From Salisapilia sapeloensis CBS 127946 (lineage: Eukaryota; Protista; Oomycota), in the NCBI GenBank assembly GCA_023334545.1, contig JAADVB010000077.1, forward strand, positions 1 to 64,000: a stretch of DNA of 64,000 nucleotides, given 5' to 3'. The notes below the pieces were generated by a model that was not told where the DNA came from, made no database searches, and saw nothing but the letters and a program-made list of their open reading frames with translations. Each line of letters opens with the position of its first letter. Positions within the stretch are counted from its first letter, which is position 1. Made by a program: the position numbers and the translations under genes. This document shows, one piece after another, positions 2,985 to 42,984 of the stretch.

Positions 2985-3138
2985 ATCGAATGCTTTTCAT
3001 TTTCTTGAAGTTGTGTTGAAGTTCTTACTCAGATATCAGAATAACTGTCTCATTTGTTGGTTAAAAGTGCTGCTAGTTTTACGAAACGACAGTCGTTGGC
3101 CGTCATCAGTTTGGCTTCGACTGGAGAATCGCATCGAG

Positions 3139-4656
3139 ATGGGACGCAAGTTTATTGATAAGAAGAAGGCACAGCACTTTCACTTGGTGCATCGTAGTCA
3201 ACGGGATCCCAAGTCGAATGATCCGAATGCATCTGAGTATGTCTTGTTGTCATCGAAACGACAGGAAGAGTATGGGTCAGATGAAGAACGAAAGGAGTCG
3301 GAGGATTATAGCGAGGAAGAGGTTGATAGCGACAGTGATGATGATGATATGCCAGATCTAGTTGCACCGTCCAAGCCGGCTCCTTCCCAACGTAAAGGTC
3401 GATTTAATGCTGTCCAGGCAAAGGACATGGTCGATGCGGAAGGTATGGTGCGTGATGGCTATGACTACTCGCAGCACATGAAGGAGATGGGTGAAGGACG
3501 ATTTTACTCTGCGAGTGGGCACTTTGCGACGGAGAATGAACTGGCAAAGAAAGTGGAGCTGCCAGAGGATGTGTTGCCTAGTGGGCAGGAACAAGACCGA
3601 TTGTTGGAAGCGATTACGTTGACAGAAGACCTGATGGATGCTGATTTAAAGGAAGCTTTGACCGACGACCAAGCTTTCGAAGAGATTGATGACGACTTTA
3701 TGGCTCAAGCAGCGGTAGAGACGGGAGACGCAAGTGATGAGTTTGACTACGATGCACACATTGCCAAGCTAATGGCAGCTGCGAGTGGACACGTCGGTCA
3801 GGACGATGATGAGAGTGATGAAGAGTTCGATTCAGAAGAGGAAGAGGAGGAGGAAGTGGATAAAACAGAGGAACAGCGCAAATTGGATGAATTATTCGAA
3901 AAGACGTTGGCAGAGGAATATGATGACGACGATCTCGGCGAGTTGGACGATATGGATCCAGAACTCCATGACGGGATTGAGTTAGAGGGAGAACTTTTGG
4001 ATACGATCGTCGAGGATTACAAGCAGGTGCAGCAGCAGCTTGTGGATGACGATGGCAAGGTCGGCAATCCATACCGTAGTGGCAATCACCTGCAGGAAAT
4101 TCTGGAACAATGTGCCTTAGAGGGAGTGCAGGATGAAGATGATTTGAACGAAGAGGAAGCTCCACCGGCAGCAGATCCGACGTTGGATTCTAATTTGAAT
4201 GAAATGGTCGTACGGAGCGAGTACTTGAGACCACAAGAACGAGAAAAGTGGGATGTCGAGACGATCGTGAGTACGTACTCAAACATGGATAACCATCCGA
4301 CGGTCATTCGGGAGTCTCGTCCGACTCGACGGAAAACCAGGAGCAGCTTTGCTGACAGCACTGCGTCGAACCAGACGTTACCTCCGATCCAGTTATCGAG
4401 CAAGACAGGTATGCCACTAGGTGTGTTTGAAAGCAAGCAGCCACAGAAGAAGAAGGAGAAGGGCTTCGAAGTCGAGGCTAGAAAGAAGCACGGGAAGGAA
4501 AGCAAGGAAGAGAAGAAGGCACGTAAGGAAGCGGTAAAAGCACAAAAGGCCAAACGAAGAGTCGAGAAAAAGGTGCGGAAGGATGCGTATCGGGAGGAAG
4601 AGCAGCGTCAGTTGGCGCAGACGCCTGCCGACATGGTGTCGACGTTCCGATATTAA
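3139..4656 (+). CDS. LTV1: Protein LTV1 homolog (40S biogenesis factor)
   Basis: N-terminus MGRKFIDKKKAQHFHLVHRSQRDP, DGYDYSQHMK, acidic centre, WDVETIVSTYSNMDNHP, and C-terminal KEEKKARKEAVK..KRR.EKK. The true start at 3139 lies inside the longer track ORF. Confidence 0.9.
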   Translation: MGRKFIDKKKAQHFHLVHRSQRDPKSNDPNASEYVLLSSKRQEEYGSDEERKESEDYSEEEVDSDSDDDDMPDLVAPSKPAPSQRKGRFNAVQAKDMVDAEGMVRDGYDYSQHMKEMGEGRFYSASGHFATENELAKKVELPEDVLPSGQEQDRLLEAITLTEDLMDADLKEALTDDQAFEEIDDDFMAQAAVETGDASDEFDYDAHIAKLMAAASGHVGQDDDESDEEFDSEEEEEEEVDKTEEQRKLDELFEKTLAEEYDDDDLGELDDMDPELHDGIELEGELLDTIVEDYKQVQQQLVDDDGKVGNPYRSGNHLQEILEQCALEGVQDEDDLNEEEAPPAADPTLDSNLNEMVVRSEYLRPQEREKWDVETIVSTYSNMDNHPTVIRESRPTRRKTRSSFADSTASNQTLPPIQLSSKTGMPLGVFESKQPQKKKEKGFEVEARKKHGKESKEEKKARKEAVKAQKAKRRVEKKVRKDAYREEEQRQLAQTPADMVSTFRY

Positions 4657-4753: not shown

Positions 4754-5809
4754 TTAGAAGCTGACGTCTAATAGTCGAGAGACATCGTCGTCGTAATTGA
4801 GTGGAGAGAGCGGGGCGTCCCATGTCCCAGGCTCGACGTTGGCGAGATCCATCAAGAGTTCTTCTTCAAAATTATCAGAAGAATCGGCATCTTGCGCCGG
4901 CTTCTCCTTTTCATTTGTCGCCTGTTTGTTGGTTACATTGTAGTCGTCGAGTTTCGTCTCGTAGTTCATGACTGAAGGGTCGGCAAAGTCGTCCATGGCC
5001 GACGCGATGGAGCATTCGTCCGTGAGAAAATCTTGAATATCCATATCGAAGGAAGTATCGTCTGCGGGAGACTGTTTCGACATTCCCTGCTGTGTATTAT
5101 CATCCACGTAAAACAAGTCGTTCTTCATCTGCATGGGAGAAGGTAATGGGTACTTGCTGTCGTTCTCCCGCAGGCGCTCATCCCACCTGCCATCATCTGG
5201 GTTCCTCACGCTAAGGTCGACGGGAGGCATATTCACCGGCGTCATAGCCGGCTTGAGAGCTGGCGACATATTGTCGATGGGTGCCGACTTGGCCATCGGC
5301 GAATAGCACATGGTCCCGTTGTTCAAGGTAGTGGGTGTAATGATGGGCGCGCTGAATCCCATGCTATCCATCTGAGTCTGCGCCTGTGCTTTGGATTTGG
5401 CCAAGGGGTCAAACCACGGGTCTTTTGCTTTGCCTGCAGATCGGCGCTTGATGTTCACGAGCAGGTCAGGCCGTCCCTTGCGGAAGTAGGAGTGTTGGTA
5501 TATGGTCAGTTGCCCTTCGGTGACGCGATAGAAGGAGTAAAAGTTGAGCTGTCGAATGAGGCTCGAGAGGCGTTTATGACGGAAATATTTCGGCAAGCAG
5601 TGCTCAGCCATCATTTTGGGGTCGACGATGCAAAAGGCTGTGCCATTGCGAATCCAGGAGACGATCGAAGACGGCTCCGAGTCGACCATGCGATAGAGTT
5701 TGCTTACAAAGGAGCCGGAGGCATTCGCATCCTGTTTGTCTGAAGCGAACTGCTGGAGCGTCTGCGACCGCGGTCGGCGTACTACATCTTGCATGTCCTC
5801 TTCCCTCAT
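4754..5809 (-). CDS. HSF-type DNA-binding domain protein
   Basis: FVSKLYRMVD..IVSW..GTAF.I.DP..LPKYFRH..SSLIRQLNFYSF..HSYFRKGRPDLLVNIKRR, followed by an acidic/Pro-rich tail. Start is at 5809 or 5794. Confidence 0.88.
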   Translation of the reverse strand: MREEDMQDVVRRPRSQTLQQFASDKQDANASGSFVSKLYRMVDSEPSSIVSWIRNGTAFCIVDPKMMAEHCLPKYFRHKRLSSLIRQLNFYSFYRVTEGQLTIYQHSYFRKGRPDLLVNIKRRSAGKAKDPWFDPLAKSKAQAQTQMDSMGFSAPIITPTTLNNGTMCYSPMAKSAPIDNMSPALKPAMTPVNMPPVDLSVRNPDDGRWDERLRENDSKYPLPSPMQMKNDLFYVDDNTQQGMSKQSPADDTSFDMDIQDFLTDECSIASAMDDFADPSVMNYETKLDDYNVTNKQATNEKEKPAQDADSSDNFEEELLMDLANVEPGTWDAPLSPLNYDDDVSRLLDVSF

Positions 5810-6359
5810 CTTTCTCTCTCTGCACTTGTGTAGTTGCTGTGTTTTTGCTAAATGAAGTTTCGAAAAAAGACGAACGCTTGGGTTCAAGATGGGCCAGCAC
5901 TTGGATTCAGTATACGTCGCAAAAACGAGGCGCCGGGTCGAAAAACCTGCAAGCGTAGGACATATAACCCTACACCTTTAGAGACAGCGAATCGCACGTC
6001 GCCGTTTAGATTTGGTGTATGCCGTGATTGCGTACAATGTGGCCGATATGAGCATTTTAAGCAGCACGCGCTTTGCATCGCCAAAGTAATGAGCAAGCGT
6101 GAGTGCTCTTTGTCTACAAAAGTTTAAAAAATCGGTGCATGCGAGATCAATCGAGAACCTTCACTCGCGTTTGATACCAACATTCACGACAAACTTGTAC
6201 TTTGTATGACATCCACAATCTACTCGACTCCAGACTAGAAAATTCTTGTCCTTCACGTTTATCTACTAGCATGTACGTAACTGGGCATGTCGCAGATCGA
6301 TTACGCTGGCTGGTTGTTTCCAGGCGGATGTTCAGAATGCAGGCTATTTCCGTCCTACA

Positions 6360-6984
6360 ATGCATGCTAGCGATATCGTAGAGGCAGTCGTACGCACAAT
6401 CCAGAGCAATCCTGGAAACAATCTAGTCGATAGGTACAAGGACACCTGCCGCATCCTCACGTTCGAACGCGAGCTCGAGACGTTCAACGACGCCTTCGAA
6501 AGAAAAGGCAAGTTCCGACCAGACACTGTCATCCACGTTCATCAGACTCCTGGCCAAGTATACGATACAGGATGCACCCGCTCGTGGAAGCAGTCTCGGC
6601 AACGGAAACTACCTCCCATTGAAGAAACGATGGATGCAGAGCGATGGGACGTTCATGGAAACGTGCACCCTTTGCGTACGTTGTCTAGCCTTTTGAACCT
6701 GCATTTGATAGCTGAACGCATGCACATCAGGCCATAATCTTCTAGGCGATCCTTACGCCAGTGCTGGAAAGCTGATCGACCGGATGCGTCAAACCAGCGC
6801 GTTACAAGTATATCAGCGTTATCAGCCCATTTTAACGCAAGATCTGGCGACAAGGGATAAACGTCGCATCCAAGCGTTAAATCGGAAACGAGCGGCACGT
6901 CCGTCGGTTGTAGCAAGCACGCACCACCTTGAGTCGCGATTCGACCAGTATTTTCGTTCAAGTCCATCTCTGCCACAATTATAA
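6360..6984 (+). CDS. Hypothetical spliced protein (5' end uncertain); intron 6676-6730
   Basis: Removing GTACGT...CATCAG (55 nt) joins ORF 6360-6737 in frame to ORF 6784-6984 (HPL-R-HNLLGDPYASAGKLIDRMRQ). The frame is also open upstream of 6360 to about 6324. Confidence 0.5.
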
Positions 6985-7279
6985 TGTCCTCCTCGACATT
7001 TCAATGTCACTTGGCTCGTATGTCGTTTGCCCCAGACGGAGTCGGATAGAAAAGTATGATTTTACTTGTCAAAAGCACGTCACTCAGATAGCTCTAACAC
7101 ACTCATCCACGTATTCCTCGTGTGGATGGACAGGGAACAAACCCCATTTTCTCCTAATCGTAATCAAATATTTTCATGACCTAAAACATTCGTTACGTCC
7201 GTATCAGTCCCTGTCGAAAGTGGCAGAGCAAACTACTTCGAATACTGAATACTTGTCCACGACGAACCCTTCGGAGCAC

Positions 7280-23940: not shown

Positions 23941-26334
23941 TTACGCTTTCTTTTCCCTGTCTATCTCTTCTGCTAACGCGACGTAGTCCACGGGCTTTCG
24001 AGCTCGTTTTGAACGGACATTGAGCACTGATGTAGCCGTATCGCTCGGACGTTTCTCCCCACTCTCCTGCTTCGCATGCTGCTGTCGTAACTTGTTCATC
24101 AACTGCGCGTCATGCTCTGCTTCTTGCTTCACAAGTTCCATATCCCACTCTTCTGTAGTGGGTGCAATTAAAGCGCGAGCATGTGCTGCTACACTACGTG
24201 CGAATGGAGATACGATCCGTCCGTGAAAATTGTACCCACCTTCCAAGACCGAGATCAATCTTCCTTGGCAGCACGTATTCGCCACGCGACGTACATGTCC
24301 TACGAGCCATTCATAGTCCTGCTCCATTAACGACACATACCCTAAATTCACTAGCTCTTTCTTATGTGCATCAAAGCCAGCAGATAAAAAGATCAAGTCC
24401 GGATTAAAGTCGACTAGTTTCGGCAGGACTTGGTCTCGGAAGGCACTGCGCCACTTCAATCTGGATACGGCACTCCCTTCTTCACAGATGGGGAAGCCAA
24501 CGTTCCAAATAAGAGGTGGGGAGTCACAGCTACTGGCGCCAGACCCTGGGTAGAACCATACAGGCGGCTGTCCGTATGGTTGCTCCGACTGAGGTTTATG
24601 ACCGTATCCATGGACAGAGGTGAAGAAGACATTGTCTGCGTCATGTTCATTCCGCCATGGCTTGTACTGCTTCACGAATTGTTTGCCTCGACCGTACGGG
24701 GTGGCATACGACACTTCACATTCGGAAGGAAGGAGCTGACGGATGATCTCTTGCGTACCGTTGCCATGATGCACATCAAAGTCAAGAATAGCTACTTTTT
24801 CAATCGACTGACTGCCTCGACGGTATTGACTACGAGCATATGCAGCGCCAATGGCGACGTTGTTGAGAAGACAGAACCCACAGCTACCTTCTGGGTCGTT
24901 CTCACACGTAACTTTTCCCACCGGTCCTGCGTGGTGGCCAGGTGGACGGACGATGCAAAAGCTGGTCGTCGTCTGACCTGACAGGACGTCGTCTACGGCA
25001 CGACAGACTGTTCCAGCGGCTCGTTTGGCAGATTCAAACGACTGAGCAGATAATGCTGTATCATAGTCTAAAGCGTACGTTTTGTTCTCCACGGCGAGAG
25101 ATTTACATGCGCTTTGTAGCTTGTCGACGTACTCGTACTCATGGACACGTAGGATGTCGATGATATCTGCCATCGGACTATCCGAGTGCCACGAGACATG
25201 CTGTCGTTGGAATTCATTCGATCGGAGGATACCATAGATAGGATTCACTAGCGATGCGACACGTTCCAAGTTCTCGGGTGGAGGCTCCTCCCGTCCACGT
25301 TTGTAGGAAGCTAATGGGAGGTGCTGGAAACAGTCGTCATGACAGTAGATTCGCGATTGGAAGGAGGTGTCTTTCGTATCAGCAGTGCTGTCTAGGTACT
25401 GAACGATGCTCTGGTGTCCACATCGACGAGCAATATCCAAAGCAGTGAGGCCTCTGTACTCTACTGCCGAGGCGTCAAAACCATTCTTATCTACCAAGAG
25501 CTTTAGACCGTCTAGAAAACCACTTTGAGCAGCGATGTGACCTGCAGTCTCCTTTAAAGACGTGACAGTAATCGTACTTGCATGTAGTCTTTCTAATAAT
25601 GCCTTAGCTGTGTCCAATTGATGGAATTTCATAGCTAAATGTAGTGGTCGCATGCCAACTCGATTCCCTTTTTCCCATATTGCTGACATGGTTTCACCTT
25701 GATCTGTGATGTTGGCTTCTTCTTCTTTCATAAGATTGAGAAAGCACGACATGTCGAGACCGTACATGGCACAGAGGTGAAAGACAGAATTCCCTTCTTC
25801 ATCACGTTGGCGAACCTTGTCCAGCAAATGTGTCCAAAAGTCTTCTGTGAAGTTTTGAGCTTTCGCGTCAGACAACATTTGATCTAGTAGGGATACTGCA
25901 AAGGCTGGTTGAACAGCTCCCATGCGTAGGACTAAGTGTAGTAGAGGAGTGCCCAAGTCAGCGCATTTAAGACGGAGCATAGCGGTGGTGAGTGCTTCCG
26001 AGTATTGCCACAAATAGGCTGCACAGTCGATCTGAGCGTGGAGAATAGCTACATGGATGGGAATGCACCCCGTTTCGTCCTTTTCCAGCATACAGGATTC
26101 AGCGGTCATCCGTGCCGTCTCCACCCGACGTTGGTCGATAGACATGTCATCGTCCGGATCAGGACGCTCCGTCGGTTTCGGAGGAAGTACTGCTTTCAGC
26201 TTATGAATGTCTCCTTTCTCAGCAATATCGTGCAAGAAGAAGAGAGAATCCTGAAGACCTTCGTACTCGTCGTAGTCTTCATCTTCCTCCTCGCCGTCCA
26301 CCTTGCGATCCATCGTGTCTGCGCTTGTGTACAT
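23941..26334 (-). CDS. Ankyrin-repeat histone deacetylase (class II-like)
   Basis: Ankyrin repeats (GCIPIHVA, GTPLLHL, GNSVFHL, GMRPLHLA, ETAGHIAA, GLTALDIA), then HDAC motifs RPPGHHAG, GFCLLNNVA, DFDVHHGNGT, SAGFDAH and LEGGY. Confidence 0.92.
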   Translation of the reverse strand: MYTSADTMDRKVDGEEEDEDYDEYEGLQDSLFFLHDIAEKGDIHKLKAVLPPKPTERPDPDDDMSIDQRRVETARMTAESCMLEKDETGCIPIHVAILHAQIDCAAYLWQYSEALTTAMLRLKCADLGTPLLHLVLRMGAVQPAFAVSLLDQMLSDAKAQNFTEDFWTHLLDKVRQRDEEGNSVFHLCAMYGLDMSCFLNLMKEEEANITDQGETMSAIWEKGNRVGMRPLHLAMKFHQLDTAKALLERLHASTITVTSLKETAGHIAAQSGFLDGLKLLVDKNGFDASAVEYRGLTALDIARRCGHQSIVQYLDSTADTKDTSFQSRIYCHDDCFQHLPLASYKRGREEPPPENLERVASLVNPIYGILRSNEFQRQHVSWHSDSPMADIIDILRVHEYEYVDKLQSACKSLAVENKTYALDYDTALSAQSFESAKRAAGTVCRAVDDVLSGQTTTSFCIVRPPGHHAGPVGKVTCENDPEGSCGFCLLNNVAIGAAYARSQYRRGSQSIEKVAILDFDVHHGNGTQEIIRQLLPSECEVSYATPYGRGKQFVKQYKPWRNEHDADNVFFTSVHGYGHKPQSEQPYGQPPVWFYPGSGASSCDSPPLIWNVGFPICEEGSAVSRLKWRSAFRDQVLPKLVDFNPDLIFLSAGFDAHKKELVNLGYVSLMEQDYEWLVGHVRRVANTCCQGRLISVLEGGYNFHGRIVSPFARSVAAHARALIAPTTEEWDMELVKQEAEHDAQLMNKLRQQHAKQESGEKRPSDTATSVLNVRSKRARKPVDYVALAEEIDREKKA

Positions 26335-26771: not shown

Positions 26772-29700
26772 TCACACGAGGAGACCAGTCGTCTGTCGAG
26801 CAATCGGACTACGTCCATTGGATCGGTGTGAGCTCGGGCTCTCACTAAAGTTCGAGGACCGAGACTCTTCCCGCGACATGGGATTCCGATGCTCCGCATT
26901 CGACATGGCCGCACTAGCCGACTGCACCGTATGCATCGACATGTACGACTCAGCCATCGTCGTTTGAGCGTCGTAACTGAACGCGTATCCGCCATTCGAG
27001 CGTCGCTGTGGATCACTCCGCCGTTCACTCTTGCCATCGCCCACCGGCGTGGACGACGTCAGGTACGAGTTCCCTTCGATAGCAGACAGATCCGCAGCTT
27101 CAATATCCACGTCGTTCGCTCTCTTCTTCGAGAGCACGTACTTCTCCTGGACGATCTGGTACGGCTGTGGGTAAAACCTGCGCTGGATGGCTGTCCATGC
27201 CCAGTGACGAAGGAGACAGACGCAGAGTGCGATCGGAATGACCATCCAGTAGGTTTCCTGCGTCAACGTGTTTTGGAAGACACCATAGTCATCTGGGAAC
27301 CACCCGGCCCAGTAGCTCGGGATCAAGATCGATAGAGGCAAGTAACAAATGATACCAAAGAGACACAAGAGGAGTCCTGGGACTTGCCACGACATTTGTA
27401 GTAGCGCCAGCTTGGCGTTCACGACGAGAACCACGAGCGTAAAGCAGATGAGACCGTACTGGACTCGAGGTGCACTTCCCCACGCAGACCAGTTCTCATT
27501 GAACGCAAACATGGTGAAGATGGCGATGACGCCGGATTCAAAGAACGCGCTGCAGACCCATCGGAAGAAGGTGTAGTTATTGAACAGCTCCATGTTCGGA
27601 CCGACGAGATATAGCTTCGGGAATCGTTTTCCGACTTGCCACGGCACGTCGTAGTCAAAGACACCGAGCCAAATGATCGGGAGGGACGTGTACGCGACGT
27701 TGTACAATTGGAAAGCAAACTCGCTGTAGAACTTTTGACCACTACTGCCAGTTGCGAACATGTACCAGTATTGTGCTAGGACCATCAAGATATTCTTGTA
27801 GAACATGTATCCAGTCAAGATCGACATGCGCTTGTAGTTCAAACGACCGTGATGTAGCAGTAACTTTTCCAAGAAGGCGAATTGTGCGATCGCATAGTCA
27901 CTCGAGTTCACGGCTTGCATACCTTCTTGACCACAGATACCGACACCGACATGTGCCTTTTGGATCATCGCAACGTCATTTGCACCGTCTCCAATCGACA
28001 ATGTTCTCGCCTTGGCGTTCGTCTCTCGAACGAGTGCGACGACTTCTGCTTTCTGAGAAGGAGATACACGACAGCAGACGACAGCATCACTGAGGAGAGA
28101 GAGCTGTAGGAAGGATTGACGACAGCGGTCGTCCAGTAAGGTCATTTCGAGACACTCACCGTCGATGACGACGGCCTGGCGGAAGGAATTGCTCTTTTTC
28201 TGGTCGTAGCACTCCTCCAAGTACTTGGCTAGCTGCCCTGGGGTCGAATAGAGACTGCAGTTGAGTACGATTTGCTCCATGTCATTGTCCATGAGCTGAC
28301 AAGCGTACGAGATGTTGATAGCAGTCTCCTGCTTGTCACCAGTGAGCATCCATACTTTCATGCCGGCCGTCATGAGGTTGGCGATCGTCGGAGGAACGTC
28401 CTTTTGCAATTTGTCTTCAATCGCAGTCGCACCCAGGAGTTCTAGATCCATTTCTAGCTCTTCCATGAGCTTATCGATCGCATTCTCTTCATCATTTTTC
28501 CGCTTCTCAATCTCTTCCAACGACGTCGTGGCCTCCTTGTACTTTTCACTCCATGCTCTGTACTCTTCTTCGTGCAGTTGCTTCCGAGCAACAGTTAACG
28601 TTCGAAGTCCATCGTCTCCGAACGTCTCCAAGTGCTGCATCGTGTTCTTCATCACGTCACTGTCATTCTTCTTCGATAACAGAGGATATAGGACATTATC
28701 CGCTCCTTTCGTAAGCAACCAGATCTCGCCATTCGGATACTTCGCAACGACTGACATGCGCTTTCTAGCAGAAGTGAACTCGAGTACATCCAAAAGCTCA
28801 AACTCCTGTAACTCCGACTCGGCACTCTTATCTTCCAAAAGACTCTTGTGACGAACACGCACGCGCGCGATGCCAAGTCCTCTCGATTCGAACTCAAAGC
28901 CAAAGAATTTGGCACCAGACACGAGTGCTTGTTCATCCGGAGAAGATGCCGAGAAACGGACTTCCCCTGTGTCCTCGACTGTCTCTGGGATGACCGTATG
29001 GCAGAGACCTAAATGGAGGAAGAACTCGGCTTCCTTACTGCGCTGATCGTCCTTCTCCAGCTTATCCCAGAGCTTCTTATCGTCAAAGTTCACGTATGGG
29101 ATTTTATTATGCAGTGTCTGAGCCATTGGATCCTTATCGTCTGTTTCTTCCTCTGGCACGTGGATGCCCTTACGCTTTAAAGCAGCGCGGCCGATCTCGG
29201 TCGTGCCTTTACCATAGGACACGCCATTGATACTGCACTTGCGGAACTCCATCACGTTACAAGTTAGAGTGCCTGTTTTGTCGGAGAAGATGTACGAGAT
29301 CTGTCCGAGCTCTTCGTTCAAGCCCATGGATCGAACCATCATACGAGTATCGAGTTCACCATAGTACATATCTAGATCTTGTGTCATGAAAAAGGCTTGG
29401 AAGAACATGACCATACTGATAGTGACGTAGAGAGAGACGGGGATCATTTGGTAGATGAGGAGGAAGTAGTATCCGAATCCGACAAACCACTGGGAGATGA
29501 GATTTGGATTCCAATCCAAGTACGCGTCGGCATCTCCTTGATTCGCGTTTAGCCATAGCACTTGTGTCGTCGTTGCGACGGCACAGAGGACGCATAAGAG
29601 GATGAATAGCCAGATGATCATGTTGTTCACGGTCTCGTTGATGGAACTCCACTTGGGTTCCGGTTTCGCCATACTCTGCATGATCTTCGTGTCTGAACCA

Positions 29701-30779
29701 GTGTTGATCACGAGACCGTACGCCCAGTCAGTGTTCCGGAGCTGACATCCACGCAAGAGAACGTTTTTGAGCGACACTGGGTGCGGCACAGAGGACGATT
29801 CGGAACTACCGTCTGTGACGGTCGTCGGCTTCCCCGAGTCACGATTGTCCGGCACGGCAGTAGAGTTTAGGTAGAGTGTTCCGTCGAAACGACCGATGAC
29901 CTTGTTCGGGTTCTCGCATCGGAGGTAGCCATTCAACCTCGCAGCGTCTGGCACCTGCTGTGCGTACAAGGTGGTGTCACAAGCCTGTCGGAGCTTGAGG
30001 TTGGTCTCGCCATCGAGACTCTTCGTCTCCACGTAGCAGATACCAGTCGGGTTCGATGGGTCTGCCTCGGAGACGGCGAGAATGAGCAAGTCTGCAGGAG
30101 CCGTTTGACGATTGTGGAGCTTAACGATGGATCCGACGGTCAGTTGGGACCACGGGATGGTTGCCACACCCGGATCTGACTCGACTGGTTTCATCTTCTG
30201 ACGTCCGTTTGGGTTCGTAAAAGTGTCGACGAGAACCTGACATTCGGCCGAGTTGGCTTCGTTATCCGCCCTATGCCGACGGTTGTCCTCGATGATGGCG
30301 AGGACTGCGTCGACGGCGAGGATGAACATGAGGACTGGCAAGTTGGTCGGAACACCGTTCGTATTGGAGATGATAGGGATACACTGGAGGACGGATACGA
30401 GTAGGAAGTAAGCATTCGCTAGCTAGAACAAGAGAATGAGCGAAAGGAGTACAAGTGTCCTAGATATCATAAATCATACTTTTCGGAAGGACTCGAGCAT
30501 GAAGAGTGGGAGGAAGCTCCAGGCAGTGTACTTGGACGTAATGACGACGTTGGAGCAAAAGTGGTCTGTCGAGAGCGTGTCGGCACCACTTTGTTTCGGT
30601 AGTGGCACGAGCCGATACTCTGCGTCATTCGAGCTCTTTGTCTCATCATTCGTCTCCTCTTGCTTATAGTTCGTGTCGGCATTCGCAGACGTCTGCATGC
30701 CGTTCGTGCCCGTCGTGTCCGGTTTGGAACTCGTCGAGTCTAGTCGCTGATATGGAGCCGCGTCGGCGTTTTCGTCCAT
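26772..30779 (-). CDS. P4-type phospholipid-transporting ATPase (flippase), paralog 1; exons 30480-30779 and 26772-30422
   Basis: DGET, DKTGTLT, GATAIEDKLQ, MLTGDK, GDGAND. A 57-nt phase-0 intron at 30423-30479 (GTATG..TTCTAG) joins FMLESFRK to LANAYFLL. Confidence 0.95.
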
Positions 30780-33612: not shown

Positions 33613-34614
33613 ATGAAAGCTCTGCAGGTCACGCACTTTGCTACGTCCGGCAACATCCAGTGGACGGAGGATGCAGCTAAACCAGCGATCGTTAAGCCAA
33701 CACAACTGCTTGTCAAAGTGTCTGCAGCATCATTAAATCCAGCAGATATTGGTATCATGACAGGTGGTATATCACTCGTCTTCCGTGCCTCCAACTGTCC
33801 ATACATCCCCGGTCTTGATCTATGCGGCATCGTGGAAGAGGTTGGAGAGAAATGCAAGGAGTTTAAAAAGGGAGACCGTGTTGCTGCTGTGTTAGACAAG
33901 ATCGAGGAAGGCGCTTTTGCGGAATACGCTGTCTTTGAAAGCTCCCAAGCGGCGCACGTCCCAGAATCTTTAAGTGACCTCGAGGCTGCTGCCCTCCCAA
34001 CAGTCGGATGCACTGCCTTTAGTACCATTAACGCTGCTAATATCACAGAGGGTGCTCGTGTGATGGTTCTTGGTGGATCTGGCGGAATTGGATCGTTAGT
34101 CGTTCAGCTATGTAAAGCGAAAGGAGCTTCATTCATCGCAAGCACGTCCACAAACACCGATCTCGTCAAGTCACTCGGCGCTGACTTGGTCATCAACTAC
34201 AATGAGCAGACATGGTGGGAGATGGATGATGTGAAGGAGCTAGACTTGATCCTCGATTGCATCGGTTCACAAGATGCTTGGACTCATTGCGATGAAGTTT
34301 TAAAGAGTTCTGGTCGATACATTGCCGTCGCGGACGATCCGAACACAAAACTCCGAGGTATCACCGAAATGCTCACGTTTGTCAGCCGTCTTGCCTGGCG
34401 TTCCTGGAATCCGTTCACGACATCCTACAAGCTCATCTGTTCCTTTCCCACGGGCTCAGACGTCGAAGCTATGTTCACTAGCTTCCAAGACACTGCGCAT
34501 GCCGTGCTAGATCCTACGTCCCCGTACACATTCACACAAGCATCGATGGAAGCTGCTGTGCAACTACAAGCAAGTCATCACGCCAAAGGAAAGATTGTCA
34601 TGCAAATGGAATAA
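33613..34614 (+). CDS. MDR-superfamily NADPH:quinone oxidoreductase-like protein (zinc-independent)
   Basis: VKVSAASLNPAD, IPGLDLCGIV, GAFAEYA, AAALPTVGCTA, GGSGGIG, HAKGKIV. No Zn-binding Cys cluster. Confidence 0.9.
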   Translation: MKALQVTHFATSGNIQWTEDAAKPAIVKPTQLLVKVSAASLNPADIGIMTGGISLVFRASNCPYIPGLDLCGIVEEVGEKCKEFKKGDRVAAVLDKIEEGAFAEYAVFESSQAAHVPESLSDLEAAALPTVGCTAFSTINAANITEGARVMVLGGSGGIGSLVVQLCKAKGASFIASTSTNTDLVKSLGADLVINYNEQTWWEMDDVKELDLILDCIGSQDAWTHCDEVLKSSGRYIAVADDPNTKLRGITEMLTFVSRLAWRSWNPFTTSYKLICSFPTGSDVEAMFTSFQDTAHAVLDPTSPYTFTQASMEAAVQLQASHHAKGKIVMQME

Positions 34615-34640
34615 AAGCTCTTGCAACGTATCTTGTTCGT

Positions 34641-36038
34641 TTAGTGACTAGCATCTTGACTCCATTGGATCGTATTCGGATCAATGCCTTCCTGCACCAT
34701 CTCCCACAACGGACTCATCTCGCGTAGACGCGTCACGTGCTTAGCACACATGTCGACGGCAAAGTCGATCTCATCTTCCGTCGTGAATCGACCGATACCA
34801 AAGCGAATGGACGTATGTGCCAAGTCTTCTCCAACACCAATGGCACGCAATACATACGAAGGCTCAAGCGAAGCACTTGTGCAGGCACTACCGGAGCTCA
34901 CAGCGATGCTCTTTAACGCCATCAAGAGACTCTCACCTTCGACGTACGCGAACGAGAGGTTGATGTTACCTGGATGACGCTTCTCCAAGTCACCATTGAG
35001 AACCGTATGCGGCACACGGCTTGTGATGCCGTTGAAGAGACGCTCCGAGAGGTAGCTGACCCACTTGTGGTCGTTGTCCATCTCTTCCAAAGCAACTTCA
35101 CAGGCCTTGCCAAAGCCGACGCAGAGCGGAGCTGCGAGCGTACCACTGCGCATACCACGCTCCTGTCCACCGCCAGACATGATCGGCTCGAGACGGACGC
35201 GAGGACGACGACGGACGTACATGGCTCCGATACCCTTGGGGCCGTAGATCTTGTGTCCAGAGAGAGACATGGCGTCGATCTTCATGTCGTCGACGTCAAT
35301 GGGGAGTTTGCCAAGCATCTGCGCTGCGTCCGTGTGGAAGAAGACCTTGTTGCTGCGGCAGATCTCACCAATCTCCTTGAGCGGCTGCAGGACGCCGATC
35401 TCATTGTTAACAGCAATGACCGAGACGAGGGCCGTGTCCGGACGAATGGCGTTCTTCAAGTCTTCCACGTTCACCAGACCGTCATTACCGACTGGCAAGT
35501 AGGTAACTTCAAAGCCTTCGCTCTCTAAGGCTCGGCAAGAGTCGAGAACGCACTTGTGTTCGATCTGTGTCGTGATAATATGCTTCTTCCTGCCTTTGTT
35601 AAAGCGAGCAATGCCCTTGACGATATTGTTGTTCGATTCCGTCGCACCAGACGTAAAGATGATCTCCTTCGAATTGGCGTTCACGAGCGTCGCGACTTGC
35701 TGACGCGCCTTCTCCACTGCTTTCTCGGCGTCCCACCCGTATTCGTGCGAACTCGAGTGTGGATTGCCATAGGCAAAGGTAAGGTGTGGCAGCATCGCAT
35801 CGAGGACGCGTGGGTCCAATGGCGAAGTGGCTTGCACATCCAAGTACGCAGCTTTGCCTTCCATCGTCGGCTCACCACGAATGGCAAAGCCTGGCGAGAA
35901 GATTTCTTCCGAATTGATATTCTTCAAGACGCTTTCCGGCACGGCATTCGCCGCAGTGTACCGGTTATCCGTGGCAAAGGTACGTGCGAATTGCTTCTTG
36001 CTCCGACGAGCAAATGTGGTGGAAATACGTCGCATCAT
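34641..36038 (-). CDS. NFS1: Cysteine desulfurase, mitochondrial (NFS1/IscS)
   Basis: Arg-rich presequence, [24 protein letters not shown] lysine [10 protein letters not shown], catalytic SSGSACTS. Confidence 0.97.
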
Positions 36039-36110
36039 TCTTCCTCCTTGGGTAGTACCAGCGGAATGGAATTGTGAGTGTAAAGTTATGCCTTGCGCAC
36101 GATCATTCGT

Positions 36111-36235
36111 CCAATGATCTACCAAAAAGGTTGCGATTGGTCGGTCAACGTTAAACAGCGCACGTCGCTTCTATTGAAGAAAAAAAGATAGAGACCTCTT
36201 TTTCGCCAATCAACGTGCATAACTTTTCGACCAAT
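36111..36235. promoter_or_regulatory. Bidirectional promoter with four CCAAT boxes (NFS1 / uL11m)
   Basis: CCAAT at 36111, 36206 and 36231 and ATTGG at 36136, within a 237-bp head-to-head spacer. Confidence 0.55.
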
Positions 36236-36275
36236 CACCGCACGGAAGGTTTGGACACCAGTCAAGGAATCCCCA

Positions 36276-36710
36276 ATGTCGAATGCGGTGAAAGGAATTG
36301 TGCGCCTGCGTGTGGCGGCAGGCAAGGCGAGTCCGTCGCCCGCGATCGGTCAAGCCTTAGGTCCGTTAGGTGTGAACATGATGGAGTTTTGCAAGGCTTT
36401 TAACGAACGTACGGCCAACCTGGTGGAAGAAACGCCGGTGCCAGTCGTCCTCACGGCGTTCAATGACCGTACATTTACGTTTTCGACGAAGACACCTGCT
36501 GCCTCGTGGTTCCTCAAGCGTTCTGCCGGTATCGAGAAAGGCTCTTCGACCCCAGGTCAAGGTTCTGCCGGGAGCGTGAACCTGCGTCAGATCTACGAAA
36601 TCGCGCTTATCAAGCATCAGGATGAGCACCTAGAGCACATTGACTTGTCGTCGATCTGCAAGAACCTCATCGGGACGGCTCGATCCATGGGTATTGACGT
36701 GAAACCATAA
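36276..36710 (+). CDS. MRPL11: Mitochondrial ribosomal protein uL11m
   Basis: LRVAAGKASPSPAIGQALGPLGVNMMEFCKAFN, RTFTFSTKTP, IGTARSMGI. Confidence 0.95.
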   Translation: MSNAVKGIVRLRVAAGKASPSPAIGQALGPLGVNMMEFCKAFNERTANLVEETPVPVVLTAFNDRTFTFSTKTPAASWFLKRSAGIEKGSSTPGQGSAGSVNLRQIYEIALIKHQDEHLEHIDLSSICKNLIGTARSMGIDVKP

Positions 36711-36782
36711 CAATCCGATCGACTTGCAATTCTCTTTGTTTGTATTGTTTTCTCTCACTTGCGTACGATCGATCGTACGTGC

Positions 36783-38861
36783 CTACTCGGTATCCAATTC
36801 CATCTTGAGCTCGCTTTCTCGAAAGAGAGACGTTCGTCTCGAGCCCATCACGTCACTTCCCATGTAGCTAAAATCTTCAAAATGCATGGCTTGCATGCCA
36901 CCAGACGATCCGATCGTCGGACTGTCGGCCACATCCTGTTGTCGAAAGGCACTTGGGACGTACTGCAATTCGTTCGCTAACGAACTCTTTTCGCCCATAC
37001 TACTCGACAAGCGTGTGTTTACGGCCGGTTTAAACGGAGGCTCGAGCCGTCGATTCAACAGTTCATCCCAATCGACTCCTTCGAACCACGGATGTGCCAT
37101 GATCTCATGCGCCCCATCGACGCCACATCCGATCCGATCTCGTGGGTTCTTGACCAACAGTTTGCTTAGGAAGTCAATTGCCGTCGGTGAAAATAGATCC
37201 GTCGGGTACTCTGGGTCTTTCGACAAGATCTTCTGGAACATCTCTCGACGATTGCTACACCAGAACGGCGTCTGCCCTCGTATCATTTCGTAGACTAGAA
37301 CACCATAGCTCCACCAGTCGACCGAGTTACCATAGGAAGACGTTGTCTTTTGACTAAAGATAAGCTCTGGTGCCAAGTACTCCGGTGTCCCGACGAAGGT
37401 CGATCCTTCATCCTTTTCTTTCGACAGACCAAAGTCCGTTAAGGCGACGTGTCCTTCTCCATCCATCAAGATGTTCTCGAGCTTGAGATCTCGATAGAGG
37501 ATATGTAGTTGATGCAAATGAGCGAGAGCGAGCATGAGTTCCGCCGCGTAGAACTTTGCACGAGATTCATCAAAGCGTTTACTCTTTTTCAAATGCACGA
37601 AGAGAGAACCGCCGCTGTAGTAGTCCATGACCATATACAGTTTATGCCGATTCTGGAAAGCATAGCGGAGTCGAACGACAAACGGATGTTCGACGTGCTT
37701 GAGGATACGTTGCTCAGACTTTGTGTGTTCCACTTGCTGCTTCTTAAACACATCTTGCTTGCGTAGAACTTTCATCGCATACACACGCCCGGCGTTCCGA
37801 CCTGCTTTCTTCTTGGCTAAGAATACTTTGCCGTAAGCTCCTTTCCCAACTACTGACAAGAGGTCAAAGTCGTTCACACTCATGCTCGTGGAAATGACCA
37901 TGGATCGACGTGACGATCCACGACCGGAGCTAGATCGCTCCCGTCCATGCTCATCAACAAACTCGGCGTCTTCTTCGTGCGGAGGAAGGTACGACGCAGT
38001 GGACATGGCGGCTGCACCTGCATAAGCGTACTCGGACAGTCGATTCATTTCGTCCATCAGTTCATCCTCGATCGGTTCATCCGCCATGGACCCTCGTGCG
38101 CTTTCAAAGAACGCAAACACCGTGTCCATACTCGCGCCAATCGTCCATGCAGTGTTACTACTCTTTTGCTCCGGACCGTTGGGTTCGCCAGCAGACAGAC
38201 TGAGGCATCCGAGCTGGCCACTGTCCTGTAGCTGTGCGCCAGGAGGTTCTCGAGACCGCTGCCAGTTGATCGCACGCGTACCAAGAAGACCACGTACTTC
38301 CTCATTCTCGTCCGGGTCGAGTCGATGGGACGATTCGATGAACGCGATGGCAGCGAGTTTCGATCGGAGAGCAGGTTGGGAGGTAATAAGGTACTTTGTG
38401 AGCGTCCCACCGCGACCGTAGGCTGCAATGTAGACTTGGCTGCAGGACGCTCGGACGCCATAGGTTTCCCATACGTGTCCAATGTGCTGTTCTGGTGTAC
38501 TGGAGTGTGGAATGGGAATCTTTTCATCTCCTGAAATGACGTGGTTGTAGCTTGGGTTCGTCACGATGACGCCATAGCCTTTCGAGAGAGCAGAATGGAT
38601 GTAGGGAAGCATGGATCCGGAGCGGTAGTGGTCTGGGAGATCCGCGGCTTCGAGAACGAGTGATCGACTCCAGATACCTGGTTGAATCCCGTTGCCACAG
38701 ACGATGATGAGGAGAAGTCGTCGACAAATGTGCCAATTCGCACTCATAAAGATAGAGCATTTTACTGGACTATCTGCTGATGGGATACTCGTTTCAACAA
38801 ATCCTAGTTGTAACATCTTTTGCTGTTCCTCCTGGACAATCCTAGCAAGACGCTGCTCCAT
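36783..38861 (-). CDS. AGC-family Ser/Thr kinase (RAC/SGK/S6K-like) with an N-terminal Arb2/FAM172-like alpha/beta-hydrolase-fold domain
   Basis: Kinase: GKGAYGKV, YAMK, YRDLKLEN, DFG, TFVGTPEYLAPE, hydrophobic motif FEDFSY. N-terminal about 255 aa resemble FAM172A (SIFMS..LLIIVCGNG..GIWSR..GSMLPYI..A...GYGVIVTNP..PEQHI.HVW..AYGRGG). Confidence 0.9.
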   Translation of the reverse strand: MEQRLARIVQEEQQKMLQLGFVETSIPSADSPVKCSIFMSANWHICRRLLLIIVCGNGIQPGIWSRSLVLEAADLPDHYRSGSMLPYIHSALSKGYGVIVTNPSYNHVISGDEKIPIPHSSTPEQHIGHVWETYGVRASCSQVYIAAYGRGGTLTKYLITSQPALRSKLAAIAFIESSHRLDPDENEEVRGLLGTRAINWQRSREPPGAQLQDSGQLGCLSLSAGEPNGPEQKSSNTAWTIGASMDTVFAFFESARGSMADEPIEDELMDEMNRLSEYAYAGAAAMSTASYLPPHEEDAEFVDEHGRERSSSGRGSSRRSMVISTSMSVNDFDLLSVVGKGAYGKVFLAKKKAGRNAGRVYAMKVLRKQDVFKKQQVEHTKSEQRILKHVEHPFVVRLRYAFQNRHKLYMVMDYYSGGSLFVHLKKSKRFDESRAKFYAAELMLALAHLHQLHILYRDLKLENILMDGEGHVALTDFGLSKEKDEGSTFVGTPEYLAPELIFSQKTTSSYGNSVDWWSYGVLVYEMIRGQTPFWCSNRREMFQKILSKDPEYPTDLFSPTAIDFLSKLLVKNPRDRIGCGVDGAHEIMAHPWFEGVDWDELLNRRLEPPFKPAVNTRLSSSMGEKSSLANELQYVPSAFRQQDVADSPTIGSSGGMQAMHFEDFSYMGSDVMGSRRTSLFRESELKMELDTE

Positions 38862-39561
38862 GTGTCCTCGCTCTGGCTATTCATACGATCGAAAGAAGTG
38901 TTTAGGAACGTTACAAAGATAGATACATGTAGATTTGCAGATAGGAGAATTAAAAAGACAAAAGAGAAGTGGCTGGGTGTACCATTGCAATCAAGTGGAG
39001 TAGGGAGAGATAGCGTGGGGAGGCCGTGAAAAGTGTCGGTGTTGGCTTGTGCTCTTTATTCGAGTACGATGGATGTGAAGAATTTACAAGTGCTCAGGAC
39101 AGACGTTCCGTGTAACGATACGTCTTTGTGTGACTTGGATGCGTGGGACGTGAACGCCGGGGCAGAACTTCTCTGAGCACAGCACCGAAGCTCGACGCTT
39201 CCGTGGTGTGATGCGAGTCATATGCGAGGTTGAAATATTGGCGCAACCTTCGGACGACTTTACACGGAGCCAATCGATTCTTGAAGTCCGGTAGAAGTGC
39301 CATGGGATGCGGGACAAGTAGACGGTGTAATGAATGGGCGGATGGATAGTACTAGACTTGATGTAATGGACTGAATGGTCGAATAACTTTCTCGTGAACT
39401 TCCAAAAGTCTTTTTCGATCTTTTTTCGGTACGGTCGAGAGGTATCACTCGACTTCCAGAAAGGCTTTTACGCCTAGACTTGATTTCGTACCTGCCATTC
39501 GCGAACTTGCCTCGGCTAGGAGAAGAAGCACAAGATAAGCAAAGTGAAAGGATCGGTCAGC

Positions 39562-40217
39562 ATGACACCAACTCGTTTCGTTCTCGTAACCGTCCTCGTC
39601 GTATTACTGCACACTACGACTGCGCAAAAGTCGAAGGCGACCAGCGATAATGACACCTCTAGTTCCGCTTCGATGGACGGCTCTGTCAGTGAGGACGCTA
39701 GTGACATGTCTTCGATGGCATCTGCGAGCGGCTCGGTCGACTACGAGTGCGAATGTGACAAGGAGCGGAAAGTATCGCTACTGGGGGCCTCGGACTATTG
39801 CCTTGCGCCCGACGCAGTCTTTACGCACAAATGTGGAAACGTGAATTTGAAAGAAGGCGGTGAATGCCCACGAACTGGCGCCATGCCTTGCTCTGATCAA
39901 GGACACGTTCTCGCGAATGACAGGTACCACAGTCGCCATATATTTGTCTCGTTTCCACTAACATGAAACGTAGTTACTGCGAGTATGATAAACGTGACAA
40001 GACGTACAAGTGCGTTGCGAGTAAGAAGGACTTGGATATTCACGATGAGGAGAAGAAGAGTAAAAAGCGTCGAAAGAGATCGTCGAGCAGAAGCAAGGAC
40101 GAGAGCACACCTGACGCTGGAGATGACGATGGCGCGAGCGATGTCGATGGTAGATCGGTTCTACGCCTAGTCTTCTCGTTCGTAGTGCTCGTCGTGGGTG
40201 TTGTTGGCTTTAGCTAA
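39562..40217 (+). CDS. Small secreted Cys-rich protein with C-terminal membrane/GPI anchor; intron 39924-39973
   Basis: Signal peptide, Ser-rich linker, 8-Cys domain. A 50-nt intron (GTACC..CTAAC..CGTAG) joins ND-S-YCEY in frame. Hydrophobic tail. Confidence 0.8.
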
Positions 40218-40340
40218 GTAGAATGGAAGGCGGATCATGAGCTGGTGATTTAATAAGGAAACAAGACAGTTTTAGCTAATCTACTGTTGTATTCAAGTCA
40301 TGCAGCAAATGCAGATATTCTCGACGTATTTGACATGTAA

Positions 40341-42984
40341 TCAAGTCTTGTCGTTGTACGGATGGCTGGCATCTCTGGACATGCCACGCGTTTCTTGAAC
40401 GAGATGGAAGCGATGACGTAGGAATGCCATTTCAAATTCTCCACGAAGCATTTCAGCTGGGTAATTATCATCCACAACTGCCCACGAACCAACGAGTACC
40501 ATGAAGATGCGTGAATCGAGAAAGTCAGGAACGACGACATTGCGCATATAGTCTCGACATTCGCGTTCCACTTCATCAAATGTTGTACGACAAGCGTTTT
40601 CGAGGTGACCATGTATGCGTTCACGGATGTGGCCATCGATAGGAATCGTACGACGGGAGTTACCACCACCTAGAAACTTGTCGTATATCTTTTTCGCTGA
40701 CCGAATGACGATCTGGTACGACGGTAGACGGCGAAAGTGTTCGATCTCTTCCCATAGCATAAGATTTTCAGAGCAGTGCTGGGTTTCCAGAAATGATCGC
40801 AAACTCATGAGGCATGGCTGATATCGGAGAAGAATATCCAAATGTTGTAGCTCCAACTTGCCACGTTTCCCTGCTTCATCGATTTCACGTAACTCTGCTT
40901 CGATAGATATCGGTGAAACACCAGACGGCCCATCATCCCCCGGTGTGGATGAATCCGATTGAAAGGTCATCAGGGACGGCGACGAGTTCGACTGAGACGA
41001 TGCTTGCTTTTTCAAAGTTTTCCGCAAGTTTTCATACTGCTTCGACTTGACGAAGCGAGGTAACGAGTCTTGTAGCATACCGTGACGGACACGAGCGGAT
41101 ATCTTTTTAAACATGTCCACACTTGGGTTGTTGATTCGCGCAGCAATTTCGTCTCGCATCGCAGTACTCATGTCCACTTGTAACTTGGCGGACGGAAGGA
41201 TGTACTTGCGGAAAATCTTCTTTGCGCTATGTTGGAGATACTCGATACCGGGCAGCAGTTTAAAGTCCTCCACTTCCTCACAGAATGCCAAGTAATGCTC
41301 CCAGCCTCGCTTTTGCATGAACGTACGAAAGAATTTCTTGGCGAATGGGTCTTCCAAGATCGTTTGGAGCTGTTCTTCTGGTGAAAGTTTGAACTCTTCC
41401 AGACCTCCTTGGATTGAAATTGCCTCATTTGTGGATGTTGATTTAATGGGAATGAGTTTCTCCACAGGGTAAAGCATAGCAGTTTCAATCAATTGGGCTT
41501 CCTTCATTGCCTCAATCTTACGCTGCGCAGCCTCCGTGTCTTCAACGGATAAACGCCTTGGTTGGTGATGCGGAATATTTTTCTTGGGCTCTGGATGAAC
41601 ACATTTAGAGTAGCTCAAGTACTCTTCCGATCGGCAAAACCCAGGCCAAATGGTTTCACTAATCTTATCAAAGATAATGGACTGAATTTCATAAAAGTTC
41701 TTTGGTACGAGGACTGCACCGCTTTCAGCGATTTCCTGAATCTCTTTTTCGATTTCATCGTCATCGAGAGGAATGTGGTTGGGAGACGTCGGTTTGCAGT
41801 ATCGTTCGTAAATTCGCTTTGTCTTGTTACCAATGAAAGAGAGGTTGGGTAGGCGCTTGCAATCCTCAACTTCCAGATAAAAGAGTAAGTTTTCTAGCGC
41901 CAACGCTTCCATACAGAACGTTTTTAGGAATCGAAGTTTGGCTGGATGCACTAGGATGTCACAAAGAGCATAGGATTCCTCCGCCTCCGGACTGTTTCCT
42001 GCTTGTGCTCCCGCTGGAGCACAAAACTCTTGCATCTTCTGAAACAGCTTACTTTCTCGAAAGCGAGGATAGACAGATTTTTCCAATGAAACAATGCAGA
42101 TATTCTGCGCTGCAGAATAGATTCCAGCAGATATATTGTCCGAGTCCAACGCCGCTTCAATTTCACTCAGCATCGCACCAGTGACACATACGGGCATGTA
42201 GGCTTCGGGAGATAGAAACTTGTCGTAGATTTTGCGTAGACGGCGTATGGTGTAGGAAGGCGATGGTAAGAGCTGCAGTGCATCAATTTCAACCCAGAAC
42301 TTGAGCATGTCAACGCCAGCGGGTATCTTTTGCTGCTGGGCATAATTAGTGAACAACTTGAAGGCGGCCGGGTCCGTCAGCACGTCCGTGGTGAAGACTG
42401 GTCCAAGATTTTGAGCTAAATCGAAACGAGTAGTGGAACATTTGTTAGCGCGATTTCCATTTAAGGCGTCTCCCGCAGTGCGAGGACGATGGTTCGTGGA
42501 CACTTTCACATCACGAGATGTAATCTTAGCATCAAAAACCGGTTGGGACTCACCGATAACAAGTTCCTGCGAGACCGTGCCTTCCTTCTTGATAGTTGCG
42601 TTTGCTTGTTTCTATTCGCATGCACGAAGACGAAAAAGATGTCATGGGTCTGTTTCACCTAATCGGGAAGCATTGCACATACCTGATCGGTCGATGACTG
42701 AATAGGCTCTAACACAACATTTGGCCTGATACGTGGGGTCAAGATGCCGTTTTGGCTCTCTTGCGTTTCGCTCGACAGCGTGCGCTCTGCTGTCAATGCT
42801 CTAAGGGACTCAAACATCTCTTCATCTGATATTCCGATCTTGACCAGTTCATTATATTTCTACAGTCAAGGGTAGAATGGTTTCGAGTTACTAGGTGCAA
42901 ACTGCGTGTCGCTACTAGTCATACCTCTTGTATCACCGCTAGTGTTTCAACGTCTGTGGTCGCGATCGACGCGCCGGCACCCAT
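40341..42984 (-). CDS. Protein with four tandem RGS domains and an N-myristoylation motif; exons 42925-42984, 42683-42859 and 40341-42611
   Basis: Phase-0 introns 42860-42924 (65 nt) and 42612-42682 (71 nt) give MGAGASIATT... Four repeats of the RGS signature (L.DP/HP..F..F...ENL.F..EVEDF..IY..F/Y). Confidence 0.85.

Follow-up and report, generated by a model that had tools for sequence, protein, structure and literature searches.

What does an Arb2 domain do at the N-terminus of an AGC protein kinase, in the place where related kinases carry a PH or PX domain? The question is raised by an open reading frame (ORF) of 692 codons at positions 36783-38861, minus strand, of a 64,000-nucleotide window (the whole stretch of DNA analysed, positions 1 to 64,000 of contig JAADVB010000077.1, GenBank assembly GCA_023334545.1) from the oomycete Salisapilia sapeloensis CBS 127946. 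A first interpretation of these letters, here called the sequence-only reading, had described the product as an Arb2/FAM172-like domain fused to an AGC kinase and had linked it to RNA silencing. Judged by its sequence, the 692-residue protein is the orthologue of the Phytophthora infestans kinase PITG_15089 and represents one class of a family of Akt/S6K/Ypk-like AGC kinases found across the stramenopiles, in which Arb2 replaces PH or PX. We consider it likely that the Arb2 domain would act as a non-catalytic regulatory module, binding a partner or dimerising, on an Akt-like kinase regulated by PDK1 and TOR.

Domain structure of the protein

The Arb2 domain comprises residues 1-258 (38088..38861; this and all other parts of the protein lie on the minus strand). 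The Pfam model Arb2 (PF22749) matches residues 6-206 with 72.5 bits, well above its gathering cut-off of 26.8 (E = 4.6e-20), whereas the older Arb2-like model PF09757 has no match at E ≤ 1 in this protein or in PITG_15089. Among proteins in which the domain stands alone, FAM172A/ARB2A comes closest (31% identity, about 265 residues) and has the same order of motifs: QPGxWSR, NPN, SSPEEH..VW, the nucleophile elbow, xSxH, RAINW and SAG. In BLASTP, the sponge ARB2A-like protein P0137 is 31% identical to the domain over 265 residues (E = 1e-28), and a profile of the Arb2 region, built from an alignment of 52 family members, finds this same stand-alone protein, named “cotranscriptional regulator ARB2A-like” (ARB2A being FAM172A), with an E value of 1.8e-42. 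The same profile matches the Arb2 part of Schizosaccharomyces pombe Clr3 (PDB code 5IKK; E = 8e-5); a PDB search with the single sequence of the region returned only a marginal lipase match (E = 0.055). The N-terminal region therefore follows FAM172A motif by motif, and the Pfam check that the sequence-only reading had proposed bears out its domain assignment. The two proteins nevertheless differ in several respects. FAM172A stands alone, has the elbow AHSYGG and carries a nuclear localisation signal (NLS)/CK2 loop, whereas the Salisapilia protein has Gly for the elbow Ser, no His after strand 8 and a fused kinase. With the fusion and an elbow that lacks Ser, it does not qualify as a FAM172A/ARB2A orthologue.

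An AlphaFold2 model of residues 1-269 was obtained with high confidence (predicted local distance difference test, pLDDT, 91.1; predicted template modelling score, pTM, 0.90). The five best matches in a Foldseek search of the PDB were to Hda1 (5J8J, E = 7e-9), Clr3 (5IKK, E = 3e-7) and Hda1 complexes (6Z6F and 6Z6O), with ordinary α/β-hydrolases coming next. In this predicted structure the domain is shown to take the fold of the Hda1 and Clr3 Arb2 domains, which are non-catalytic α/β-hydrolase folds. The sequences of these two are, however, only 12-15% identical to it, and in both proteins Arb2 comes after a deacetylase, at the C-terminal end, and serves in dimerisation and histone binding.

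The degenerate elbow, AYGRGG, is formed by residues 147-152 (38406..38423). In the alignment to P0137, which reads AHSYGG, Gly149 stands at the Ser position of FAM172A-like proteins. The His position is empty as well: residues 219-245 are free of His, and no His follows strand 8 across the orthogroup to which the protein belongs (class A, see below). Gly is found at the nucleophile position in all class A members but one. The exception, P0019 from a Logan assembly, has the elbow Ser (AAYSRGG instead of AAYGRGG), still without a His after strand 8. Because the nucleophile has changed from Ser to Gly and there is no His after strand 8, the domain cannot, to judge from its residues, be a classical Ser-His hydrolase, and we regard it as a pseudo-hydrolase. 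This agrees with the sequence-only reading, which had noted the loss of the Ser and thought the domain probably non-catalytic, and with the published view of Arb2 domains as non-catalytic (PMC11878206; PMC5036196).

A disordered, Ser/Arg-rich linker (residues 259-330; 37872..38087) ends in the near-invariant RRSMVISTSMSVN and directly abuts the protein kinase domain (residues 331-593; 37083..37871). Pfam Pkinase matches residues 334-593 (E = 1.4e-69), and the catalytic motifs are all there: GKGAYGKV, YAMK (K364), YRDLKLEN (D458), DFG (residues 476-478) and APE. The AGC activation loop, TFVGTPEYLAPE, has its Thr (T488; 37398-37400) within TFVGTPEY. In the AGC C-terminal tail (residues 594-692; 36786..37082), a turn-motif-like DSP contains S647 (36921-36923) and is followed by the hydrophobic motif FEDFSY (residues 661-666; 36864-36881). 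The catalytic, T-loop, turn and hydrophobic motifs are kept in all orthologues, and F661, F664 and S647 are nearly invariant among 41 family members. The nearest solved structures of kinase and tail are, in order, MSK1, AKT2/1, S6K1, RSK, SGK1, PKC and PKA (E values from 2e-86 downwards). As far as residues can tell, the kinase is shown to be an AGC kinase of the Akt/S6K/RSK kind, with all catalytic residues and three AGC regulatory sites.

Apart from Arb2, Pfam at E ≤ 1 returned only kinase-related models and one chance match, with no PH, PX or other accessory domain; the description of a complete AGC kinase with activation-loop Thr and hydrophobic motif and with neither of these modules was thus accurate. 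Akt/PKB, SGK, S6K, RSK/MSK and yeast Ypk1 share a similar kinase core and similar T-loop, turn-motif and hydrophobic-motif sites. Akt, however, has a PH and SGK3 a PX domain, whereas the N-terminal module here is Arb2, and given that Pfam finds no PH match the protein is not Akt/PKB proper.

Within class A, identity to the Salisapilia protein is 66-79% for the Arb2 domain as against 71-84% for the kinase. The linker, in contrast, drops to 25-33% in distant orthologues, except for its last 13 or so residues (RRSMVISTSMSVN). With conservation that almost reaches that of the kinase, the pseudo-hydrolase is under strong constraint and must do something. A full-length AlphaFold model contains two confident domains joined by a linker with a pLDDT of about 30 (residues 279-325), and with a pTM of 0.53 it predicts no fixed docking of Arb2 onto the kinase.

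The Arb2 kinase family of stramenopiles

The sequence-only reading knew of no description of this architecture. Such a description, however, was published in 2010, when Judelson and Ah-Fong, in their survey of the P. infestans kinome, called Arb2 with an AGC kinase a novel combination in PITG_06776 (Arb2, C2 and FYVE) and PITG_01365 (FYVE and Arb2), and speculated on links to chromatin and small interfering RNA (PMC3019232). Some orthologues of the Salisapilia protein are, moreover, named “Arb2 domain” or “AGC protein kinase” in NCBI or UniProt. The fusion is therefore already known, and both the architecture and the silencing speculation are 16 years old. Both sequence and tree place the two kinases of the 2010 report in this family, and they likewise combine an N-terminal Arb2 domain with an AGC/AKT kinase. 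They differ from class A in the presence of C2 and/or FYVE, and the FYVE class keeps the elbow Ser (GYSYGG) that the Salisapilia protein has lost.

PITG_15089 itself was classed in the 2010 table as AGC/AKT with no accessory domain (PMC3019232). The failure of PF09757 to match the orthogroup, which PF22749 does match, explains why the survey missed the domain in this kinase. We identified PITG_15089 as the P. infestans orthologue P0008 (XP_002898260) by an exact sequence match in the kinome table. It has 702 residues and, like the other oomycete orthologues, matches the Salisapilia protein in architecture, AYGRGG elbow, T-loop and hydrophobic motif; the sequences are co-linear from end to end, with about 75% identity. 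Its mRNA is enriched in zoospores (2.14, compared with 0.55 in hyphae and 0.34 in sporangia, normalised per gene; PMC3019232). Full-length orthologues in Phytophthora, Pythium, Globisporangium, Lagenidium, Bremia and Peronospora are 75-77% identical to the Salisapilia protein, those in Saprolegnia and Aphanomyces 64-65% and that in Albugo 60%; an identical protein was not found in the protein collection searched. Arb2 is present in 119 of the 120 best full-length matches.

Pfam scans of representatives revealed four architectures, which correspond to classes in the Arb2 tree: Arb2-kinase (class A, which holds the gene studied here and has tree support of 100/99), Arb2-FYVE-kinase (class B, ending in Pkinase_C), Arb2-C2-FYVE-kinase (class C) and a long N-terminus followed by Arb2 and kinase (class D). 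The scans also found Arb2-kinase family members in Triparma, Nannochloropsis and Pinguiococcus, and these, together with Ochromonas and unnamed metagenomic sequences, make up a large ochrophyte group. All told, the oomycete paralogues fall into at least five classes, some with FYVE and C2 and some lacking them, in addition to the ochrophyte members. All named family matches are stramenopiles, and the statement of 2010 that the combination occurs in oomycetes only is superseded by the ochrophyte members. Each class is well supported in the tree, but its deep branches and root are not (50/47), and it gives no order for the losses of the elbow Ser. Only class B (GYSYGG, with a candidate Asp and His), PITG_13415 and the one class A sequence mentioned above keep the Ser; elsewhere the position is Gly, Asp or Asn. 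In the same tree, the Salisapilia domain groups with its Phytophthora and Bremia orthologues on a terminal branch of 0.22, two to five times longer than theirs (0.04-0.10), which suggests a faster-evolving peronosporalean lineage.

In P. infestans the Arb2 family has not two but at least five genes: PITG_01365, PITG_06776, PITG_13415, PITG_14413 and PITG_15089. The last three are listed in the kinome table as AGC/AKT kinases without an accessory domain, yet carry Arb2; in PITG_13415 the domain was read by eye only, with an elbow that reads AYSFGA. PITG_14413 falls into class D.

Transcripts, gene model and neighbouring genes

Four public runs contain the stretch, and three of them, X1-X3, come from one study. 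These three hold 95% of the words of the stretch in only about 15 Mb of contigs, and contigs mapped onto window positions 34600-40400 track the genes and not the genome. One contig in each of X1, X2 and X3 starts at 36304, 36361 or 36383 and reaches 38876; the next 106 nt are missing from it, and it resumes at 38983 and ends at about 39200-39250. The joint 38876|38983 thus occurs in one contig of each run, and a joint at nearly the same place is found in run X5 of a related organism. Since the skipped piece starts with GT and ends with AG on the strand of the gene, these contigs reflect a spliced transcript, and X1-X3 must contain RNA-derived sequence. There is no joint within the ORF, and single contigs in all three runs span both Arb2 and kinase. 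The gene is transcribed as one unit, and no transcript splits the two domains, an outcome that the sequence-only reading had named as one that would speak against it.

The sequence-only reading had also called the ORF intronless. This holds for the 692 codons themselves, which are unspliced, but not for the gene, as the 106-nt intron (38877..38982) lies just 5′ of them. Exon 1 (38983..39249, with contig 5′ ends at 39193, 39204 and 39249 in runs X1-X3) comprises the 5′ untranslated region and ends in an ATG at 38985-38983, preceded by an in-frame stop at 39096-39094. The intron (GT..AG, with the ends GTACAC and GAATAG) follows directly 3′ of this ATG. Exon 2 (36783..38876) begins with the codons PERGH and continues with the 692-codon ORF, from its ATG at 38861-38859 to the stop at 36783-36785. 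The spliced ORF, as computed, encodes 698 residues; the upstream ATG is in frame and adds MPERGH before the annotated Met (MPERGH-MEQ...). Orthologue models in Phytophthora, Globisporangium and Albugo bear a matching N-terminal extension (“...DERGKMEALL”). Because the spliced ORF is in frame and the extensions match, the upstream ATG is probably the true start, and the protein would then be 698 residues long. The start codon appears to be parted from codon 2 by the intron, whereas in the Phytophthora cactorum orthologue the extension, “...DERGKMEALL”, is encoded contiguously and without an intron.

Several further observations concern the 5′ region and the neighbourhood of the gene. The longest contig (run X2, from 39249) takes in an ATG at 39221 that opens an upstream ORF of 45 codons, and the shorter contigs begin downstream of it. 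Run X5, from a second organism (2025 runs), covers window positions 34612-39196 with the same genes at 95-99% identity, the changes being mostly in third positions; it has the same 5′ intron, skipping 108 nt with 2 letters between. Its organism is a close relative of the species studied here. Positions 39256-40225, which contain a small Cys-rich ORF (39544-39966, plus strand), are without a contig from any of the four runs and may be silent in the runs sampled. On the other side, the gene for mitochondrial ribosomal protein L11 (36276-36710, plus strand) converges on the kinase gene, the two stop codons being 72 bp apart, and RNA-like contigs extend from the kinase gene into the L11 coding region. 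These contigs represent either overlapping 3′ ends or two transcripts merged by the assembler.

A FIT-like gene lies about 3.4 kb from the kinase gene in the window, with NFS1 and L11 between them. On P. cactorum contig L001, a FIT-like gene immediately precedes the orthologue and shares its strand (2434-3591 and 5001-7142); synteny with this species is partial and rearranged. Further away, an ankyrin-repeat histone deacetylase (HDAC) gene at 23941-26334 (minus strand, 797 residues) encodes a protein in which a histone deacetylase domain comes after the ankyrin repeats, with no Arb2. It adjoins a P4-type phospholipid flippase (P4-ATPase; 26772-30341, minus strand), and this gene, further genes, NFS1 and L11 separate it from the Arb2 kinase. 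A link between the HDAC gene and the kinase gene was considered and rejected, as the two are some 10 kb apart with unrelated genes between them and nothing to connect them.

Possible roles of the Arb2 domain

Clues to the function of the domain come from its relatives. In Hda1, an arm that is inserted near the beginning of the Arb2 fold mediates homodimerisation, and histones are bound by the dimer (PMC5036196). FAM172A homodimerises as well; it is a partner of AGO2 and escorts it into the nucleus by means of its NLS/CK2 loop (PMC10205598). Among oomycete kinases, the N-terminal region of Phytophthora sojae PsYPK1 (Ps350990; XP_009525581.1, with XP_002900048.1 as its P. infestans orthologue) binds the G-alpha protein PsGPA1 and keeps the kinase cytoplasmic; when residues 2-303 are deleted the kinase goes to the nucleus, where it has a function (PMC7010300). 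PsZFPK1 is cytoplasmic and needs both its N-terminal region and T602, which the authors interpret as a PDK1-dependent phosphosite (PMC10381902). Like the Salisapilia protein, both are oomycete AGC/AKT kinases, with N-terminal regions required for function, but they are other paralogues, and neither paper mentions an Arb2 domain (PMC7010300; PMC10381902). PsYPK1 has 870 residues with the kinase starting at 542, PITG_13415 has 875 with the kinase starting at 547. By these features PsYPK1 is probably the counterpart of the PITG_13415 paralogue, which would make its G-alpha-binding region an Arb2 domain, although this is not confirmed by accession. An assignment of PsYPK1 to class D (PITG_14413) was rejected, the class D proteins being PHYSODRAFT_558276 in P. 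sojae and XP_002898881.1 in P. infestans, and not Ps350990 or XP_002900048.1.

Because Arb2 domains homodimerise in Hda1, Clr3 and FAM172A, and because the N-terminus of PsYPK1 binds G-alpha and controls nuclear entry, we favour a dimerising or partner-binding module for the Salisapilia protein too. In such a scheme, the kinase would be switched on by a PDK1-type kinase at T488 and by phosphorylation of the type carried out by TOR complexes at S647 and S665. The Arb2 domain would dimerise, bind a regulatory partner, or both, in a non-enzymatic manner, and this contact would determine the place and time of kinase action, with the disordered linker probably serving as a flexible tether between the two domains. 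Four points weigh against this scheme. The partner, the dimer and the localisation of the class A orthogroup are inferred from other proteins. The mapping of PsYPK1 to PITG_13415 is based on length, kinase position and motifs read by eye. Pkinase_C (PF00433) has no match at E ≤ 1 in the Salisapilia protein, although its hydrophobic motif is present and the paralogues P0043 and P0038 do match this model. Finally, the low pTM of the full-length model is also compatible with regulated docking.

The domain might alternatively be a ligand-sensing pseudo-hydrolase in the manner of GID1 or D14, whose remnant pocket would take up a lipid or other small molecule and which would act allosterically on the kinase. 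Positions lining the pocket (G58, G62, S65, R66, N106, S120, H126 and E176) are invariant across the family despite the loss of the triad, GID1 is among the Foldseek matches, and the FYVE and C2 domains of the paralogues suggest lipid-related signalling. In Hda1, however, the equivalent insertion is the dimer arm, and it closes the substrate pocket (PMC5036196); nor does the full-length model predict that the two domains dock. We regard a sensor of this kind as rather unlikely.

The proposal of the sequence-only reading, that Arb2 targets the kinase to Argonaute or to the histones of silencing chromatin and so couples PDK1/TOR signalling to RNA silencing, fares less well and seems to us distinctly improbable. 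In its favour, fold and profile matches make the domain a homologue of S. pombe Arb2, of the AGO2 partner FAM172A (PMC10205598) and of the histone-binding domains of Hda1 and Clr3, and PsYPK1, a probable paralogue, has its nuclear function (PMC7010300). The proposal, however, derives only from the name and homology of the domain. Import of AGO2 by FAM172A needs the NLS/CK2 loop (PMC10205598), and no such loop was identified in the Salisapilia protein. That Arb2 also occurs in paralogues bearing the membrane modules FYVE and C2, and on essentially all stramenopile Akt-like kinases, points to a generic regulatory role. PsYPK1 accumulates more in the nucleus once its N-terminus is removed (PMC7010300), where targeting to chromatin would predict the reverse, and the relative PsZFPK1 is cytoplasmic (PMC10381902). 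Taken together, the FYVE and C2 paralogues, the cytoplasmic PsZFPK1 and the nuclear exclusion of PsYPK1 argue against a role specific to silencing.

A bifunctional enzyme, in which Arb2 still hydrolyses a substrate through other residues, is very improbable. S120, H126 and E176 vary little or not at all, P0019 has the elbow Ser within class A, and the FYVE class keeps GYSYGG with its candidate Asp and His; the nucleophile is, however, Gly in the Salisapilia domain, the orthogroup has no His after strand 8, and the known Arb2 domains are non-catalytic (PMC11878206; PMC5036196). An artefactual ORF, whether a pseudogene or a run-on of two adjacent genes, has practically no chance of being the explanation in view of full-length co-linear orthologues across the oomycetes, single RNA-like contigs covering both domains in three runs, and the strong conservation of both domains.

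We therefore return to Arb2 as a probable non-catalytic module for dimer or partner contacts. The new points are modest: the apparently split start codon, the presence of Arb2 in the PITG_15089 orthogroup and in two more P. infestans kinases, the reach of the family into ochrophytes, and a probable Arb2 domain in the region with which PsYPK1 binds G-alpha. Their value lies in tidying the record, with Arb2 as the default N-terminal module of the whole stramenopile AGC/AKT family, ochrophyte algae included; the PsYPK1 and PsZFPK1 studies treated the essential N-terminal regions of their kinases as having no known domain. If the G-alpha-binding region of PsYPK1 is indeed Arb2, the pseudo-hydrolase would gain a concrete, testable function in pathogens of crops and fish. 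If Arb2 were to carry the kinase to Argonaute or histones, a whole family of Akt-like kinases of stramenopiles would connect growth, G-protein or TOR signalling with silencing by small RNA or chromatin. The behaviour of the PsYPK1 N-terminal region suggests, by analogy, a milder version, in which Arb2 would be a family-wide module that binds G-alpha and controls localisation. The Arb2 module may also offer an interesting regulatory surface specific to pathogens, as none of the named matches with this architecture comes from a plant or an animal.

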